Below, one piece after another: positions 7,568 to 61,247 of a stretch of 64,000 bases of DNA. How positions within the stretch are numbered: position 1 is the stretch's first letter; every line of letters begins with the position of its first letter. A program made the position numbers and the translations under genes. A model generated the notes under the pieces. It made no database searches and was not told where the DNA came from. It was given only the letters and a program-made list of their open reading frames with translations. The DNA is from Lepidodermella squamata (taxonomy: Eukaryota; Animalia; Gastrotricha): positions 2,046,001 through 2,110,000 of the forward strand of contig JBLDXI010000025.1 in the NCBI GenBank assembly GCA_047495785.1. The letters run 5' to 3'.

Positions 7568-8159
7568 GAATGAAAATAATACTGAATTGTCATTAATTCT
7601 CAGTGACAAAATTCTATTCTAATAATTGAAGCTTTTTTGAAAGCTGTCTGAAATATTTCTATAAATGGGTCTGGTACAGGAAGTCGTACAATCGACTGTT
7701 TTTTAAATTTTCGGCCTCGAAAGCAATTGGGAACAGGTCACCGAGTTCTTAGGCATTTTGCAAACAAAAAGTTGGATGTTGGATGAATTATTCACAGTTT
7801 ACTTTCCTCAAACGGAGTTCATTGTAGCATTAATTCTCATTCGTATCCAAAAAGCAATGCTTCACTCGCCATTAGTTAATAATGAATGACGTTGCTATGG
7901 GAAACATCAATCAAAGCCTGACGTAGTCGCATTTCACACACACCTATTAATGGTCAGATTTTCTTCACAATGAAGGCCTATTCCCTTGAATACGCTGCTT
8001 CTACATGGATGTATTCTTGCCCCTCTGTTTTTTAATAGATCAAGCTGTGAATAGGGCTCAAATCTCGCGGGAGCACGAGAAAAAAGCAGCTTCTTTAGTA
8101 TTTTCACGAATCCTCACACCCGTCTGCTCTTGAAAGGGACCACTCGAAGTCGTCAAAAA

Positions 8160-10644
8160 ATGCTAGTTGCCCTCAGCAAAACGAACCGCCCGCAGACAGC
8201 TTCAGCTGACTCGATGATGAACGAGTTCGATGTAGCAGCGTATCAGCAGAAAATGGTCGAAGCTACCCAATCGATCTGCCGGTTGTCGTATCGCAACTAC
8301 AAAGGTGAATTATGCCGAGCGATGGGCTTCCTCCTCGCCATCAAATTACCCATCAAAGGCAACGTATTTGGCCTCATGACAAATGGAACTTTCCTGCCTC
8401 GTCACATCCTAGAATCGAGCCGATTCTTTTGCTTTGACATGGAATTCGATGAGTCACTGACAAATATGAAGCAGCATACGATCACTGTTGCTCTACATCG
8501 AGATATCGAAAGCTTTTACACATCGGATCTGAAGCATTTAGATGTAACTTTTGTAGAATTACGGCCTCAAGTTCAGCTGGCTTTCGCTGCGAACAACTGC
8601 GTGTTCCTTAAATCATCCGAGGAAGCTTTCCCTCCAACGGACCAAGACATTCTGATCGTCGATGAAACACTGAATTTGGCGAAATCGCGAATCTCGAGCA
8701 GTGGACGAATGCCGTCTGAACGACAGCTGACAAAGTTCGGTATGATCGGATCGCCGGTTTTGAACGACTTCTCTTTCAGTGTAATTGCTGTTGCGAAAAC
8801 GGGGGACAAGTTCTTCAAGAATGTGGCGACTGATCTTCGGTCAATTGTTCAGGATATTATTAAGGAGGGATTGAAGTTAGTCCCTCTGCCGCCCCCACCT
8901 CGGAAGTCTGTCATTGACAAAGAAATAACTACCATAGATGCGGTGAGTTCTATTCTAAATTCAGCTGTTCATCTTCTGATACTATTCTCTCGCAGACTAA
9001 AGGAAGATTGGCCCATATCAGGGACTCGGTTGTTATTCCTTTCGCGATGCGAGCATCCATTTGTGCTCGTTTGAGAAGTATGACAGAATTAAATTAATTT
9101 TAATGGTCGTGATAAAATTTGTTTCCAGATTTTCTAATACTCTCTGCTGATGATCTGCTTTCTTGCTCTGATGATCAAGTTAAGAGAGTCTTCCCGGAAG
9201 ATAGCCTTCAAAAGGCTGTCACTAAATGGCAAAAAGCCATAAACAGGAATCCGGTATGATTTTCCTATTATAATATATCGTAAATACAGCCGAATGGTTA
9301 CCTTTGAAATAGGATGAACAACTTAGAAAGGAAACAAAGCCACAGCGTAAAATATTGATCAATGGCTACGCTGCCAAACGAATCATTAATTGCTTCAGAA
9401 ATCCATTCAAGGTGAGAAATACACTTTGACTTGAATGATAACGTTACTTTTGGTCCCTCTTATAGCCTCGTTCTGGTGTTCGAACTTGCTTGAGCGATCC
9501 TCAATTTTTCTCGTCGCTAGGGAAATCGCCTAAAACGAAACTCTTCGAAGCTCCCTGCTACATCCGAGCGATACTTAACATCCCAGAGCAGCCGCCTCAA
9601 GACTCAAAAAGCAAACCGGGTACACCTGTCATCCTGATTCTTACCGCTGAAGGCCACGTGATCGCTCTAACAGCACTTGACTGGTCTTTCCGCTGGAAAA
9701 CTCGCATTTCCCTACCGGAGCGGGAAAAATTAGACGCGGAAGATCGAGAAGAAAAAGAAAAAGAAGCTCCTCAGCCTATCGATATAGTTTATGCTGTTTA
9801 CGACAACATCCTAGACAGCTTGTACATAACATGTGGCGACAGTAATATTTACCGGGTGAAGCTGGCTACCTTGAAAGAAGCAGCTAGATCGCACCATAAA
9901 TCAAAAGGCCAGAAGACGAGACCTATTGTTCCTTTGAAAACGCTTCTTGACTCAACAGCAACTGGTGGGAGGTGCTTCTGGGGACTTTCGATCGACGTTA
10001 GATCAAGACTTCTCTTCGCTTGTGACAATGGAGGGGCAGTCAATGACATTTCAGTCTGGAAGCTGCCTACCCCGGTTGAGACATCGCCGAAACGAGCAAG
10101 TTTAGTAACTCCGATGGAGCTTATCGCTTCGTTGAAGGCCGATTTCTACCCTGCATTCTGCTCGTTTTTCACCCCGACTCGAGAACAAGCTGAAGGCATC
10201 ATTGGAAAAGAGAATCTAGTAAATGCAACCAATTTTCTAGTTTTAGCAATTAGCGACTGGCGGATGAGTAGAATCGAGTTATTCGCCGGTCCCTTGATTG
10301 AAGATGAGGAAGATCTGGCCAACACTGAACTACGTCACATCAGCACTGTGGCTAAGAAAGACACGGCTAACCCAACGCGACCTGGTTACATCTCAAAACC
10401 CTGTGAAATTACGTTCGATGAAAATGGCAACTTGATAGCAGCTGATCAAATGAATAACCGAGTTTTAATCTTTGGACTCAGCAGTGATGGAGGTGACGGC
10501 AGGCCATTGAAATGTGTTTGGTCCTCGAAATCTATTAACTGCGTGGTCGAGAGATTTGCGTTGGCTGTTACGCCTAATACCGGTCGCCCGGCTCTTTTGA
10601 CCCATGCTGATTATAACACTCTAGTATCTTTCGAATCGTCGTAA
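8160..10644 (+). CDS. Trypsin-like pseudoprotease + SAM-like linker + NHL-like beta-propeller (multi-exon)
   Basis: N-terminal GFLL..LMTNGTFL..LDVTFVEL..GMIGSPVL (Trypsin_2-like). Short exons at 8996-9412. C-terminal KPCEITFDENGNLIAADQMNNRVLIF is NHL-like. Confidence 0.7.
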
Positions 10645-11309
10645 TAGAACTCAGAGCTTCCTTTAAATTGATTATCACATTGAGTAGTAAAATGATATAC
10701 GTTTCGCCATAATATCGGGAATGTTTTTGTTACCCCTGGTGCGCTAGAGAGTTAATGTTTACCTTTCAGAAGCGCCGTATCTTTTACGGGCAACTTGCAC
10801 GGAAAAATAACTCAACACCTATGCTCGATAAACGATAACATCACGAAGCCATGAGGCGAAGAAAGCCGATTACTTGGATAAAATGAAGCACCCTGTTATG
10901 AATTTCACATTAGTGAATCCTTTAGAATGCATCACTGGCTAATTTTACTGATACTTAACGGAAAATCAAGAATGCATGACGAGAAATCCGGCCTGATTGT
11001 TTGCATTCATCGTAGGTCTCTGAAGGCCTAAATAGCAACTTAGCGTTCACTCTACTTTTGATCGCTCTCACTCAGATTATCGAACGAAAACAATGAGTCC
11101 ATTGATTTTTCAAGATCGCTAACGGCCGCCTCGCATGCGTTGGTCCCAACGGAGCGCGCCTTAGAGATGACCTCCATTAATAATCGATTTAGGCCTCCTC
11201 AACAATGCGAATCTTAAATTACGCCATTCCTTGCCGTTTCTTGATTTCCCCTAAGTTGAATTTATTTTCATAATTTTTTCAGAGATTAATTCGCGTTAAT
11301 TCATCCATT

Positions 11310-14300
11310 ATGGCTAACTGGGCTATGGTGTCGGGAATATCGCGGCGCCGCTCGCATAAAGCAAAGCAACAGCCGCACGCCCACCCGGCCCAACTTAACG
11401 CTGATCAATCGGCTGCTCCCGCCCCATTCGACCAGCCAGCGCCGAGTGTGCGCGACGAATTAGCCAGAGTTTTTAAAGGTATCTATTTTTTCATCCCAAA
11501 TATCCAATTTATTTCATTATTTTTGATGACCCCATGTTTTCAGTAGTGCGCGCAGGAAGCTTCACCATTCGAGAAAAATGCCAAGCATGTAAATTGACAA
11601 ACAAACTAACGTAAAAGCCCTATTCCCTTACATTTTTAACCCCGATTATTATATACGATATAGTTCTCATTTTAGACATGCACCAAAAATAGAACCAGCC
11701 CTTAATAAATCATCAGATAATCGATGATATACGGTCTATAAAAAGCTCTTTCGTAGAACTGACCATAAGCATCCCCCGTAATTGCCCTGTTATCTTTGCT
11801 GTTCAGAAAAAGGGTACTGTTATACTCTCTTTAGGGGGTATATCGCGTTGTTTTTTTCCACCTTGCGCGCGGTATAGAACGATCATTGCCTTCCGTTATA
11901 ATGCCAAGCATAATAATATACCATCTGCATCGTTGAGTCACGCACTTTATTATTAGATCACGGAATATTTTTACCGCAAAATGTGTAAGTGATTTATTGA
12001 TAAAATTAATTAACACGCAAAATGTTCGCGGCTGCGAGTCGACCGCGGCAAAGCCGAGCGCCGCAATCGTCACACTCGTCTGGCCTGGTCGCTTCCTTCT
12101 TTTTTGGTGGAAACTCATCCGGCTCGCAACACCCAAGCGCAGCACTTCTCACATCTCCAGCCGCTAAAACTCTAGCTAAAACTGCTCAAACCTCCGGCCA
12201 ACATTCGTCTGCTCCAAGAAGGCGAAAACGCAGCCGTCGAAATGCAATCATCATGACCAGTGAAGATGAAGAAGTGGCGGAGGACAGTTTGGACGATGCT
12301 GAGCGGGCTGGAGAGAAGGCTCGACATCGACGCACCTCACAGCAGAAGGACGGTACATCACAACAGAATCATCGCGAGATCATTACAATTATCACCTTAA
12401 TTATTTGAAAATCAGGTTTCGGTTTCCAACTTATAGATTTCATTCAGTCCCACTTGCTGGGTAATTGCAGCGCGAGGGCATTCTTCACCTTTCAATTAGA
12501 AAGAATTTGATTGATTAGAAACGAGCTGTATCATCTAAATAGTAGCGCTATTCGCTTAATCTTCCCATTTCTTTCTTTTTTAATGTATTGAGCACTAAAG
12601 CATGTTCCATGCCGCTTCTACTCCGTATAGGCCTGTGAAAAGACGGGGTGCTATCCGTCCTTCTAGATCTACCCCCGCTATTATGGCAAATTTCCAAGAA
12701 GGTTTTCGCTTCACTAACAACCTTTTGCACTATCTACAAAGGTCTCCAAATAATTCCTGCATTTTCTTTCATTTTCAGTCTCTCGGCGAACCTCAAACAC
12801 TGCTCAGCCGCTTTCCGCTGCTCAGCAATCGATTGCGAAGAGAAAATCTATAGTACCGCACCTTGTCAGGTCTTCATCAGGTCCTCAAGATGCTGGCTCG
12901 ACAGCGGAATTGGTCGACCTGCCTCGGAGTTGTGCCCTTCTCGCGCCGAGGAGAGTCACTAATTTATCGAAATATTCCCAGGCCTCTTTTTCACCGGCAC
13001 CTCCCCCGCCACCGGTTTGGCCTATTCGAGCACCGGCCCGTGACACGTCACCGTCATCAAGCGACGTCGACGATAAAATACTACCGAAGACCCATCCTGT
13101 CACTGCGATTCTAGAGGAAGACGATGTAGACGACGAGCTAACCGAGTCTGATGAAAGTAATACCCTTCAAATAATCACCCGTGTTAACTAACAAGAATTA
13201 CTTACAAAATATACTAACAGCTCGAGCTAGATCCGAAAGGGTTGTTAAAGAAATCATGGATATGGCCAAGCCCCCTTTGCCGCAACAGAGGTCTTTGGAT
13301 GAAACAGTGACCTCGCAACGCAAAAGCAAGCGATGGTTCGGTAAAAAAGATAAGGATGCGGAGAAAAATATGACGAAGAGTCTATCTGCCCCGAACAAGC
13401 TTGCCATGATCGCAACGGCGTCGCTTATGATGATAAACGCTAGCATTGTCGGGATTAGTCGGAAACCAAAGCCACCTGTAAAGAAGACCCATCCTGAAAC
13501 AGACTCCGAGGGTACTTTGAATGCATTATTCCCACGCTTTTCCATGCATGCTTAGATGTATTTGTCAAAATTTGCGTTTTCAATTTCCTGAGATTCAGAA
13601 TTGAAAGATATTTTTATTTCAGATGAAAAGCACGATTGCGGCAAGGAAGGGTGCGAAATCGTCCGGATCAATATTAGCGGAATGCCTTATGACATTCGAT
13701 TAGCTGCCCTCAACAGTAGGCCTGATACTCTACTTGGAAATCCAATCAAAAGAATCGAATACTGGGACCCTGTTCGCCAGGAATTTTTCTTCGACCGATA
13801 CAGACCGACATTTGAAGCAATTTTCGAGTACTACCAATACGGCGGGAAGTTGAAGCGGCCGAAGCATGTCCCTGAAGATGTTTTCCTTGACGAGGTCAAG
13901 TTTTTCGAAATCGAAAAATCATCAGTCGATGAATACCTACGCGAAGAGGGTTACGTCGAGGAGAAATACGAACTGCCCGAGGGTGAGCTGGCCAAAAAGA
14001 TTTGGATTATGTTCGAGTATCCTGAAACTAGTCGACTGGCCTTCGTAGTTGGCCTAATATCGATAGTTTTCACAGTTGTTTCAATCGTTTCATTCTGCCT
14101 AGAGACACTACCTCAGTTCGCGGCGATCCACGTTTGTGTAGACCACAAGCCTAATTTTGTCGAGCCTTTCTTCGTTATCGAAACGATATGCACTGCCTGG
14201 TTTACGTTTGAATACTTGATGAGGCTGAGTGTTTCGCCTAACAAGTGGACCTTCCTGCGTAACTTCAAGAATATCGTCGATTGTGCAGCTGTTGTTCCGT

Positions 14301-58652: not shown

Positions 58653-61247
58653 TCAAGGACTGATAATGCTAACCAGGCTGTTCAGTAATCCTGTATCGGT
58701 CTCGAGAATAGCTATTGACTTGCTCAGTTTAGAACCTAGAGTTACCACACTTGGCAAAGTCTTGTGTGTTGTTTGCCCTGGGGACGGCAAAGCAACGGCA
58801 ATGCGGTGACAGCTTTTGCCAACACGATCAGAAGACCATGAAAGCTCTCCAATGTGCTCTTCTCCATCATTTGTATCCTTTTCCTGCTCGCCATACGCAT
58901 AAACCTGTAAGAATTTGGATGATTCACGCCCCCGAGTCGAATAATATATTACTTACGATAATCTTTCCGAGTGAGCTATCACCAATGATTATATTTCCTA
59001 GCCGGTCGAATATTATTTGAGCTGGATAAGCTTTCACCATTTGAAGTTCACTAACACGTCGCAGCGTGAGTCCAGAGGTTGATCGCCGATTTACTTCAAA
59101 TTTAACAATCACAGAAGTGTCTCTATTAGGCAGAAGTCTTGTCGAAGCTACTTCTTCATTAGCCTCTAAAATCTCAACGAATCGTTTTCCGTCATCGGGC
59201 ATCAGAACTTCAATCCTTCTCTTCTTCCTATCGCAAACTGCTATGTGATAGCTTTCATCCTCCGCGGTGAATATCGAACAGCTGTAGGGCGAGAATCCAC
59301 ACAATATTGAAGCTATATGGTGGCCGATAGGTTTCCCGCATTCATCGGATGCTATCGACCATATGGAAATGTCATTGTGTTTACTTCCATGGTAATCACA
59401 ACCGAAAAGTAATCGATTCAGAGGATCGACGGATATAGTCTCCAAATGACGTCCATCTAACATTTCACTTGGAATGAGAACATCTGTCTCTGCGGAGCAA
59501 ATTTCTTGAAGGTTAGCAGCCCCATTAGTTATCAAAGTCATAACCGAGTCCATTCCAGAGTGTTTAGCCATGTCCGCTAGCAGATAGCAAACTTTAAGCA
59601 AGTTTGATGAGTAGTTTATTCGAAGAATTGATCCATCCGTTTGACCACTCGGGTAATTGAAAAGATAGATGTCATCAGAAATATAGTCGTAGGTAGCATG
59701 GGCAATTTTCAGAGTTTTCATCGCCACATTTTTAGGCATTACCAGGCTACAACTTCCGCTGAACTTCGAAGTTGTCCACTTTTTATCGCGATTTGGAAAA
59801 TGCTGCAAAAGTAAGTAAGCTATCAAAAAAGCGATAAATGGAAATTGAGAGCAACCTCGACTCTTCCGTTGCTTGTTAGCACTAACAAAGCTGGCTCTGG
59901 GAGCTGGCTGATTGGACTCCCAATGTATACGATTGCAGTTATGTCATCTTTCTCTTTCGTCTGGAAAATTTCCACCGGATACCTAGAAAGATTCACCCAG
60001 TACTTGGGCGATAATGCGTTAGTTCGACGTCGAGAGTCTGCTTGCGTAGAAACAAAAAATTGGGCATCAGTCGGACTAATCATGATGCCTGAATCTGTCA
60101 GTAGCTCATCAGGAACATCCAAATTGTCGAGCTCTTCGCAAATATCAAACGATTCGGCGTGGCCACATTGGAACTGGAATTCTTTGATAGCTGCTCGAAT
60201 TTTAGGGTGCTTCAACAAGTCACGCGATTTCGGTCGATTGACGGGGTTCTTCTCCAGCAACTTTTCGCAGATAAAATTACGAAGGTCTGCGCTGTAACTC
60301 TCATCAGTTATCGGCTTCGGTGATTCGCTGAAAAGCTTCAAGTTAATGCCTATTTTCTTTTACATGGCTCATACTGTATAATTTTCCGCATCAAGGCAGC
60401 CTCGTTAATTGCAAGAAACTGGAAACGGAATAAAATTATTTCCCATGGAAATGAAGGTTTCAAAAATAATTTACTGGTAGATCCAAAGTGGCCAACTCGT
60501 AGCAAACGATTCCCAACGTCCAAATATCGCCACGAAAGGAAAAGTGGGCATCCTGTAATGTTTCCGGGGGCCTATGAGTGATAGTTCCCCAGCCAGTCCC
60601 GGCAGAACTTATGTCTCTGAAATTCTCACAACATAACCTCATCCGTCTAAAAATTGTACGAGAAATACGTGTCGAGCTGTTTGGAAACTCCAAAGTCACC
60701 AAGTTTCAAGAAAATTCCGTAGGCAAGAAAAATGTTGTCTGATTTGATGTCCCGATGGAGGACGCGCAGTTTTGTGTGGAGATAATCAACTGCCCTGACT
60801 AGTTGGGCAGTCCAGGCCCATATTTGGCACTCGTGGTATGATCCATTCATGCTCTTTCTGGTTTTTATGGCACTCCTGAGAGTCCCAGCCTGACAATACT
60901 CCATGGTAATGTGAATGATATCTCCCTCGGTGTAGTAGTCGTAGACTCGCACGATATTTGGATGCTTCGCAGTTTGCATGATCTCATACTGAAAATTCTG
61001 TAATAAGGTCAAATTTTCGATGAAATGGCCTTACCTCCTTTCTTGCCATGGCACTGTAGCGTTCCCTCTGCTCCGGGCTGTCGTTGGTGAGAGGCAGGTA
61101 GTTGATGTCGATTTCCTTGACTATGATTTCTTCATTTGTGTCAGTTTTAGTTGCCCTGAATGCTCTGCCAAAAGACCCTCTTGCAACGTACGTCACATCT
61201 TTATACCGGTTTTTTGCTATGCTCAAGCTTGCCCCCGCTCTCGACAT
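58653..61247 (-). CDS. NEK-like Ser/Thr kinase fused to an NHL-like beta-propeller (multi-exon)
   Basis: ARGSFG, IIVKEI, HRDIKSDNIFL, LKLGDFGVSKQL, PPE, GDIWTLG. The propeller is homologous to 9490-10644. The last exon (58905-58653) ends IISP*. Confidence 0.85.

Follow-up and report, generated by a model that had tools for sequence, protein, structure and literature searches.

A strongly diverged NHL-type beta-propeller, as modelled, behind a dead trypsin-fold domain and a NEK-like kinase in the gastrotrich Lepidodermella squamata

Two genes were read in a 64,000-nucleotide stretch of the genome of the gastrotrich Lepidodermella squamata (contig JBLDXI010000025.1, positions 2,046,001 to 2,110,000, here C25:2046001-2110000; the whole stretch is called the window), and both were found to end in the same kind of domain, a beta-propeller which by modelling belongs to the six-bladed NHL type. 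Gene 1 carries this propeller behind a trypsin-fold domain that has lost catalytic residues, and gene 2 carries it behind a kinase. We think it reasonably probable that both genes belong to one lineage-restricted, modular family of signalling or targeting proteins built on the diverged propeller. The genome searched was the L. squamata assembly of 121 Mb in 151 contigs; the window has a GC content of ~42% and very short introns. Both gene models were derived from splice sites read by eye, the spliced models were searched one exon at a time, and the joined proteins were used only for frame checks and substitution counts.

The similarity between the two propellers was determined by BLASTP, and alignment of 9490-10641(+) with 58927-59826(-) was found to be significant (58.9 bits, E=2e-14), with 69 of 288 positions identical (24%). 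The collinear C-terminal propeller that an initial annotation of this DNA had claimed for both genes was thereby confirmed in its core. The same annotation had listed eight motif pairs, five of which (YD, RLLF.CD..NDIS.W, IAS..F.P..CS.FT, IA..D...RIE and FD..GN.I..D) fall inside the alignment of the two main propeller exons. The DPQFF/DAQFF lead-in aligned weakly (E=0.017 over 15 residues), and two further pairs, LTAEGHV/LTSNGRV and the last-exon SWSS/RIAVA pair, were significant neither pairwise nor with a small profile; both occupy places where other paralogs show the same pattern. No pairwise alignment was obtained between the last exons of the two genes, and a small profile of the pre-propeller exon, made from nine paralogs, missed exon 5 of gene 2.

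The fold was predicted with AlphaFold2 from an alignment of 12 paralogous propeller copies from the L. squamata genome (A1), the consensus of which contains HA.YD, ID..RRLLFACD...DISVW, LAVSD and a textbook NHL motif, P.D..FD..GNL.VAD..N.RIQVF. The model of the gene 1 propeller (predicted local distance difference test score, pLDDT, 77; predicted template-modelling score, pTM, 0.80) has 27 strands; these form six blades of four strands each, and blade 6 is closed by the strand at the N-terminus. The NHL domain of Thin ranked first in the Foldseek search with this model (1.2e-10), and in VIA-align the same domain (6xg7) gave a Z score of 25.0 with a root-mean-square deviation (rmsd) of 2.8 A over 261 aligned residues; TRIM2 (24.8), TRIM3 (24.6), Lin41/TRIM71 (24.3-24.4) and Brat (22.9) also scored highly. 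All of the top nine matches were TRIM-NHL domains, the rmsd at Z 24-25 was 2.6-2.9 A over ~255 residues, and the top cluster in the ESM Atlas was an NHLRC1-type ligase. The comparison with NHL propellers that the initial annotation had proposed thus points to a six-bladed NHL-type fold with the TRIM-NHL domains closest.

At the sequence level the NHL character was much reduced. Gene 1 has a single clear NHL motif (P..ITFDENGNLIAAD..NNRV), located in blade 5, and Pfam NHL matched six of the 12 paralogs in A1 (best 2.6e-5) and remained below significance on both window propellers. The family profile matched the NHL domain of TRIM71 at 1.3e-22, its single NHL-like blade pairing with each of the six blades of TRIM71. 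A second profile, A2, which is without the clear NHL blade, still matched generic NHL-repeat proteins, and this ties the whole domain to NHL. Taken together, the model, the Z scores and the family profile indicate that the shared domain is a strongly diverged six-bladed NHL-type propeller.

Exon 1, which encodes the front end of gene 1, matched no Pfam or PDB sequence when searched alone. Three paralogs of it were found in the L. squamata genome, and the one on contig C15, which matched Trypsin_2 at 2.4e-12, is the only one with an intact His-Asp-Ser triad (GLMTNNH, LDITF, GSSGSPV); phmmer related gene 1 exon 1 to this active paralog at 2.4e-6. In an alignment of four rows (A3), gene 1 has Thr in place of the His (GLMTNGT) and Ile in place of the Ser (GMIGSPV), the Asp being kept (LDVTF), and the profile of A3 matched V8 glutamyl endopeptidase at 6.6e-5. 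The AlphaFold model of exon 1 (pLDDT 68, pTM 0.71) retrieved serine proteases in Foldseek (best 1.8e-6, 6fez), with likeness to the sobemovirus protease, HtrA1, DegS, chymase, TEV and V8 proteases at ~1e-6 to 1e-5, and the ESM Atlas placed exon 1 among Trypsin_2 clusters (0.97). The homology to an active paralog, the fold matches and the loss of both His and Ser support a chymotrypsin-fold pseudoprotease, in agreement with what had been suggested for gene 1. No PA-clan pseudoprotease fused to an NHL propeller was found described in the literature searches, and a word-index search with the dead protease returned nothing, the collection apparently being without the own proteins of L. squamata.

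The kinase of gene 2 keeps the glycine loop, the Lys and the HRD, DFG and PE motifs, and since the catalytic motifs are all present it is predicted to be active. Its nearest solved structures were NEK1 (1.1e-17) and NEK7 (1.2e-15), ahead of PAK and Aurora by ~10^3-10^4 in E-value, and a NEK-like kinase is therefore the predicted front end. No evident signal peptide or membrane span was noticed in gene 2 when it was read by eye. In exon 5 a single frame runs from the last part of the kinase through the DAQFF motif into the first propeller strands, so kinase and propeller are physically linked. The statement that the N-termini of the two genes are unrelated held as far as the Pkinase match on 60650-61012(-) (2.3e-27) and the trypsin-like fold on 8160-8942(+) are concerned; the linker exons of gene 1 (8996-9411), which had been called SAM-like, gave no Pfam or PDB match when searched singly.

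That these architectures might be artefacts, either decayed pseudogenes or neighbouring genes wrongly joined, was considered, given that the gene models were made by eye and that the assembly was produced from the amplified DNA of one individual (PMC11660948). Such an origin is highly improbable in our judgement. The two reading frames, 755 and 762 codons long, stay open across all introns in two genomic copies whose bases differ by 3.6% and 2.0%, synonymous changes being far in excess; all ten introns of the two genes are GT-AG, 46-59 nt long and frame-preserving, kinase and propeller of gene 2 share an exon, and single-frame fusions were met again in a second species (see below). The features of both genes are collected in Table 1, together with the partners of the propeller found elsewhere in the genome.

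Table 1. Exons of the two window genes (window positions) and upstream partners of the propeller at other loci of the L. squamata genome
Feature	Position	Strand	Description
Gene 1	8160-10644	+	5 exons, 755 codons
Gene 1 exon 1	8160..8942	+	261 codons; trypsin-like (Trypsin_2 / PA-clan) pseudoprotease
Gene 1 exon 2	8996..9077	+	82 nt; start of linker; flanking GT-AG introns of 53 and 51 nt; frame open in both genomic copies
Gene 1 exon 3	9129..9253	+	125 nt; helical linker piece; similar piece behind the dead protease of the C3 paralog
Gene 1 exon 4	9313..9411	+	99 nt; basic linker
Gene 1 exon 5	9466..10644	+	392 codons + stop; DPQFF motif, predicted six-bladed divergent NHL-type beta-propeller
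Gene 2	61247-58653	-	7 exons, 762 codons
Gene 2 exon 1	61035..61247	-	Start codon, glycine loop and VAIK-type lysine of kinase; frame open in both copies
Gene 2 exon 2	60669..60988	-	Kinase core with HRD (HRDIKSDN) and DFG; Pkinase 2.3e-27
Gene 2 exon 3	60475..60616	-	Activation segment to subdomain IX (..PPE, DIWTLG); Pkinase 1.3e-6
Gene 2 exon 4	60375..60418	-	44 nt; piece of kinase C-lobe; frame backed by the open 762-codon model
Gene 2 exon 5	59856..60327	-	One open frame from the end of the kinase C-lobe through a linker and the DAQFF motif into the first propeller strands
Gene 2 exon 6	58957..59802	-	Propeller core, blades 2-5, NHL motif P.QIIFDRLGNIIIGD; family profile match 6.9e-62
Gene 2 exon 7	58653..58904	-	Last blade (SWSS..RIAVA); coding to 58656, stop codon 58655-58653
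C29			S1 trypsin + two Sushi upstream of propeller
C24:2093k			RING upstream of propeller
C17:2162k			RING upstream of propeller
C1:4006k	L047:6499-9291:+; C1:4004.0-4006.8k	+	RING 2.9e-7, B-box-like finger 2.8e-4, then divergent propeller
C21 and C9			Ankyrin + Sushi upstream of propeller
C2:183k			Ankyrin frame of 1,259 aa upstream of propeller
C2:2113k	L043		Four Sushi repeats + propeller in one 607-aa open frame
C17:2225k			Pkinase upstream of propeller
C59			Pkinase upstream of propeller

The family was found to extend well beyond the two window genes. With profile A2 and a cut-off of E<=1e-3, 42 matches were obtained in the genome, including a few near-duplicate pairs (C25/C26, C29/C46); the loci are spread over ~20 contigs, and the sole tandem pair is on C11. 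Partners were looked for at 20 of the ~40 loci; at 18 loci besides the window genes, 10 kb around the propeller was taken and the open reading frames (ORFs) just upstream on the same strand were scanned. Eight loci showed no known upstream domain, and tblastn with the kinase and dead-protease exons returned nothing there either. The idea of a constant sensor with interchangeable effectors, which had been put forward for the two genes, therefore stands in part: a homologous propeller does follow unrelated front ends, but it cannot be called constant because the paralogs are only 23-35% identical. The RING, B-box and propeller order at C1:4006k is a TRIM-NHL-like layout, and it may be the ancestral architecture of the family.

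Relatives outside this genome were sought with A2 among 1.84 billion representatives, of which 120 matched at E<=1e-3 and 28 at the stricter E<=1e-10. The long matches in several stretches were generic, mostly bacterial NHL-repeat proteins (P0007, P0012), and the near-full-length matches in a single stretch came from ENA metagenome assemblies in 20 of the 20 clusters checked and in none from annotated animal proteomes. The contigs that carry these relatives are animal-like and stem from two or more samples (ERZ23486764, ERZ27332993); the relatives include single-ORF fusions of the propeller to RING (P0004), kinase (P0009, P0016) and six Sushi repeats (P0108). The metagenome propellers are ~49% identical to their best L. 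squamata matches, the attached kinase is close to this at 47-65%, and two housekeeping genes on the same metagenome contig are 56-69% identical to their L. squamata counterparts. One metagenome gene is exon-for-exon collinear with the kinase-propeller gene at C17:2225k. No ortholog of gene 1 or gene 2 was found outside the genome in the metagenome, word-index and JGI searches: the JGI metagenome contigs gave only two weak matches (27-28%) of the gene 1 propeller to the NHL-motif region, and the word-index search with the propeller returned nothing, a length filter limiting that search and the collection apparently being without L. squamata proteins. The NCBIfam scan gave nothing useful. Scaffolds 556 and 1123 of ERZ23486764 (L038, L049) and ERZ27332993 (L050) are long contigs of a related animal, and such contigs are a useful source of orthologs for a poorly sampled lineage.

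These searches also bear on whether the genes are simply ordinary, animal-wide genes of the TRIM-NHL, malin or NHLRC type with nothing lineage-specific about them. The fold and one blade motif are indeed NHL, some members carry RING or RING with B-box, and the top Atlas cluster was of the NHLRC1 type. Considering, however, that Pfam NHL is not significant on the window propellers, that full-length matches were confined to metagenome fragments in the 20 clusters checked, that the window genes are without RING, B-box and coiled coil, and that the length-filtered word-index search returned nothing, we find this very unlikely. The family was not found described in the literature searches, and the L. 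squamata genome paper makes no mention of NHL (PMC11660948). We conclude that the propeller family is genuine and of restricted range and that, within the literature searched, it is undescribed, which agrees with the suggestion of an undescribed lineage-specific family.

A maximum-likelihood tree of 31 propellers was then used to place the architectures. Eight one-to-one ortholog pairs between L. squamata and the metagenome animal (starred in the tree) were recovered, and in four of the four pairs typed on both sides the partner is the same. The kinase-linked propellers do not form one clade and stand in at least three separate, well-supported places; the kinase-linked P0009 groups with a RING-linked pair as its sister (support 100/99), whereas no sister relationship joins the propellers of gene 1 and gene 2. 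Deep placements are unsure owing to several long branches. The tree and the stable partners indicate that partner exchange occurred repeatedly before the two species split and that the architectures have been stable since.

Selection was assessed between two genomic copies, hence on one time scale, and orthology between two species. The whole region occurs a second time, in collinear form, on contig C26; the DNA of the two copies is 96.4% identical near gene 1 and 98.0% identical near gene 2, and neither spliced frame is interrupted in the C25 or the C26 copy. In gene 1, 78 synonymous and 6 nonsynonymous changes were counted between the copies (proportion of synonymous differences, pS, 0.149; nonsynonymous, pN, 0.0034; ratio 0.023), and in the dead protease exon 44 synonymous and 0 nonsynonymous changes. 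For gene 2 the counts are 15 and 9 (pN/pS 0.17); the propellers alone have a pN/pS of 0.049 in gene 1 and 0.215 in gene 2. Both genes are therefore under strong purifying selection. The gene 1 front end can be compared with pseudoproteases of the PA clan: it shares the chymotrypsin fold of Trypsin_2 (PF13365), with an active His/Asp/Ser paralog in the same genome. Although His and Ser are replaced, the domain is very strongly constrained, and it thereby stands out as a functional pseudoenzyme that deserves a test.

The divergence between the two copies is a mosaic of 0-12% per 200 nt. Window 8000-12140 corresponds to C26:319707-323858 (L002), the copies being collinear over ~50 kb, and the differences reach 12% per 200 nt at 8400-9600 (pS 0.25 in exon 1) and almost vanish at 10600-12100. 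Plain alleles were set aside because of this mosaic, and we speak of two copies; they resemble haplotypes or homeologs of old standing that contain conversion tracts.

The protease module is itself shuffled. On C61 (L022:1465-2232:+, L022:2204-2683:+; C61:130.1-131.3k) the paralog keeps the His and has lost the Ser, and is followed by TIR_2 (1.3e-15); the two frames are on the same strand and overlap, which suggests one protease-fold and TIR gene. The active paralog on C15 (L048:3424-4281:+; C15:4643.4-4645.1k) is followed by ankyrin repeats (Ank_2 1.2e-48, L048:4317-5054:+) and no propeller, and the paralog on C3 is fully dead and is followed by a piece resembling exon 3 of gene 1.

The initial annotation had also seen a resemblance to innate-immune receptors. 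According to this explanation the propeller would be a variable sensor of foreign molecules, and the kinase, RING, protease and TIR-linked modules would be its effectors. The resemblance was not borne out by the tests that were made. The pN/pS of 0.02-0.17 comes with no excess of change in the propeller, the eight ortholog pairs are stable with their partners kept, propellers are about as similar between species as the attached kinase, and the loci are dispersed rather than tandem. Furthermore, every exon of the window genes was scanned and no STAND NTPase (NACHT/NB-ARC), Death or TIR domain was found, and a TIR domain lies near only one of the ~40 propeller loci. Set against these results are the joining of one repeat domain to many effector-type partners, the low identity among paralogs of a family restricted in range, the fusion of a dead-protease paralog to TIR_2 and the expansion of TIR_2 itself, for which 66 matches were counted in the genome, one of them located on the strand of the C59 kinase-propeller gene and 5 kb upstream of it. 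There is also a precedent in marine invertebrates, where effector or adaptor modules with beta-propellers have expanded (PMC8195603). Weighing both sides, we regard innate-immunity-like surveillance as unlikely. A bolder version appears quite unlikely, namely a gastrotrich-specific, NTPase-free surveillance or cell-death system in which propellers would sense foreign or damage-related protein or RNA and signal to the kinase, RING, protease-fold and TIR-linked modules, with the dead protease luring the protease inhibitors or substrates of pathogens, in the manner of a decoy or bait.

The signalling or targeting family that we favour could work as follows. The diverged six-bladed NHL-type propeller would be a binding or targeting module, probably the ligand-binding part with a protein or RNA target, which was joined to different catalytic or adaptor front ends through exon or domain shuffling. 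Gene 1 would then encode a cytosolic scaffold composed of the dead trypsin-fold domain, a helical linker and the propeller, and it most likely binds a partner and does not cleave it. Gene 2 would encode an active-looking NEK-like kinase, whose propeller probably recruits a substrate or regulates the kinase, by analogy with the RCC1 propeller in NEK8/NEK9 and the NHL domain in TRIM-NHL ligases.

NEK8 and NEK9 consist of a NEK kinase followed by a C-terminal, seven-bladed RCC1 propeller which regulates or targets the kinase. Gene 2 has the same order of a NEK-type kinase, its core nearest NEK1/NEK7, and a beta-propeller, but the propeller is predicted to be six-bladed and of the NHL type instead of RCC1. 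PknD of Mycobacterium tuberculosis also combines a kinase with a six-bladed NHL propeller, and its sensor was matched by the family profile at 9.5e-6; it differs in being a receptor kinase of a bacterium which spans the membrane and exposes its propeller outside the cell, whereas the kinase of gene 2 is NEK-like. The TRIM-NHL proteins (Thin/TRIM32, TRIM2, TRIM3, LIN-41/TRIM71, Brat, Mei-P26) similarly have a C-terminal, target-binding six-bladed NHL propeller behind an enzymatic front end, with Z scores of 22.7-25.0 to the model, and the paralog at C1:4006k even has RING and B-box. On the other hand, neither RING nor B-box was matched in any exon of the window genes, which are also without a coiled coil, and a recognisable NHL motif is kept in one of six blades only; the conserved DPQFF-type lead-in and the long inserts are peculiar to the family. 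NHLRC1/malin is a RING followed by six NHL repeats, and a RING joined directly to the propeller occurs in C24:2093k, C17:2162k and P0004, which are paralogs and not window genes, but the sequence similarity is confined to the NHL motif. Finally, the DED-TRADD-N and WD40 expansions (Kaur et al. 2021, PMC8195603) of marine invertebrates resemble the family as lineage-specific expansions of proteins in which signalling or effector modules are combined with a C-terminal propeller; the differences are that the propeller is NHL and not WD40, is constrained and not hypervariable, and that no Death-like, TRADD-N or STAND module was found.

Several points weigh against this family reading. The gene models are by-eye splice readings, and the propeller model was built on an alignment of 12 rows. 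The typing covers 20 of the ~40 loci, with the partner of several paralogs deduced from same-strand adjacency. The TIR-fused dead-protease paralog and the TIR frame upstream of the C59 gene leave room for a role in defence or cell death.

The family is a clear case of domain shuffling centred on a single repeat domain, in a phylum that has received very little study, and it includes two animal architectures that we did not find described, a NEK-like kinase with an NHL propeller and a dead trypsin-fold domain with an NHL propeller. Its members behave as stable signalling genes and not as an arms-race arsenal, and the TIR-fused paralog keeps the immune question testable.

The TIR_2 matches of the genome were observed in tandem clusters at C32:1888000-2003000 and C19:1081000-1137000 and also on C33, C6 and C20, those on C32 lying in open frames of up to ~2,600 aa, and they may represent a truly expanded TIR family that is distinct from the propeller family. 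The C59 gene is preceded on its own strand (L034:3703-5403:-; C59:178.2-181.7k) by an ORF which starts with a membrane-span-like stretch and matches HSP70 at 8.2e-45, and the frame with the TIR_2 match lies farther upstream (L034:6406-7212:-).

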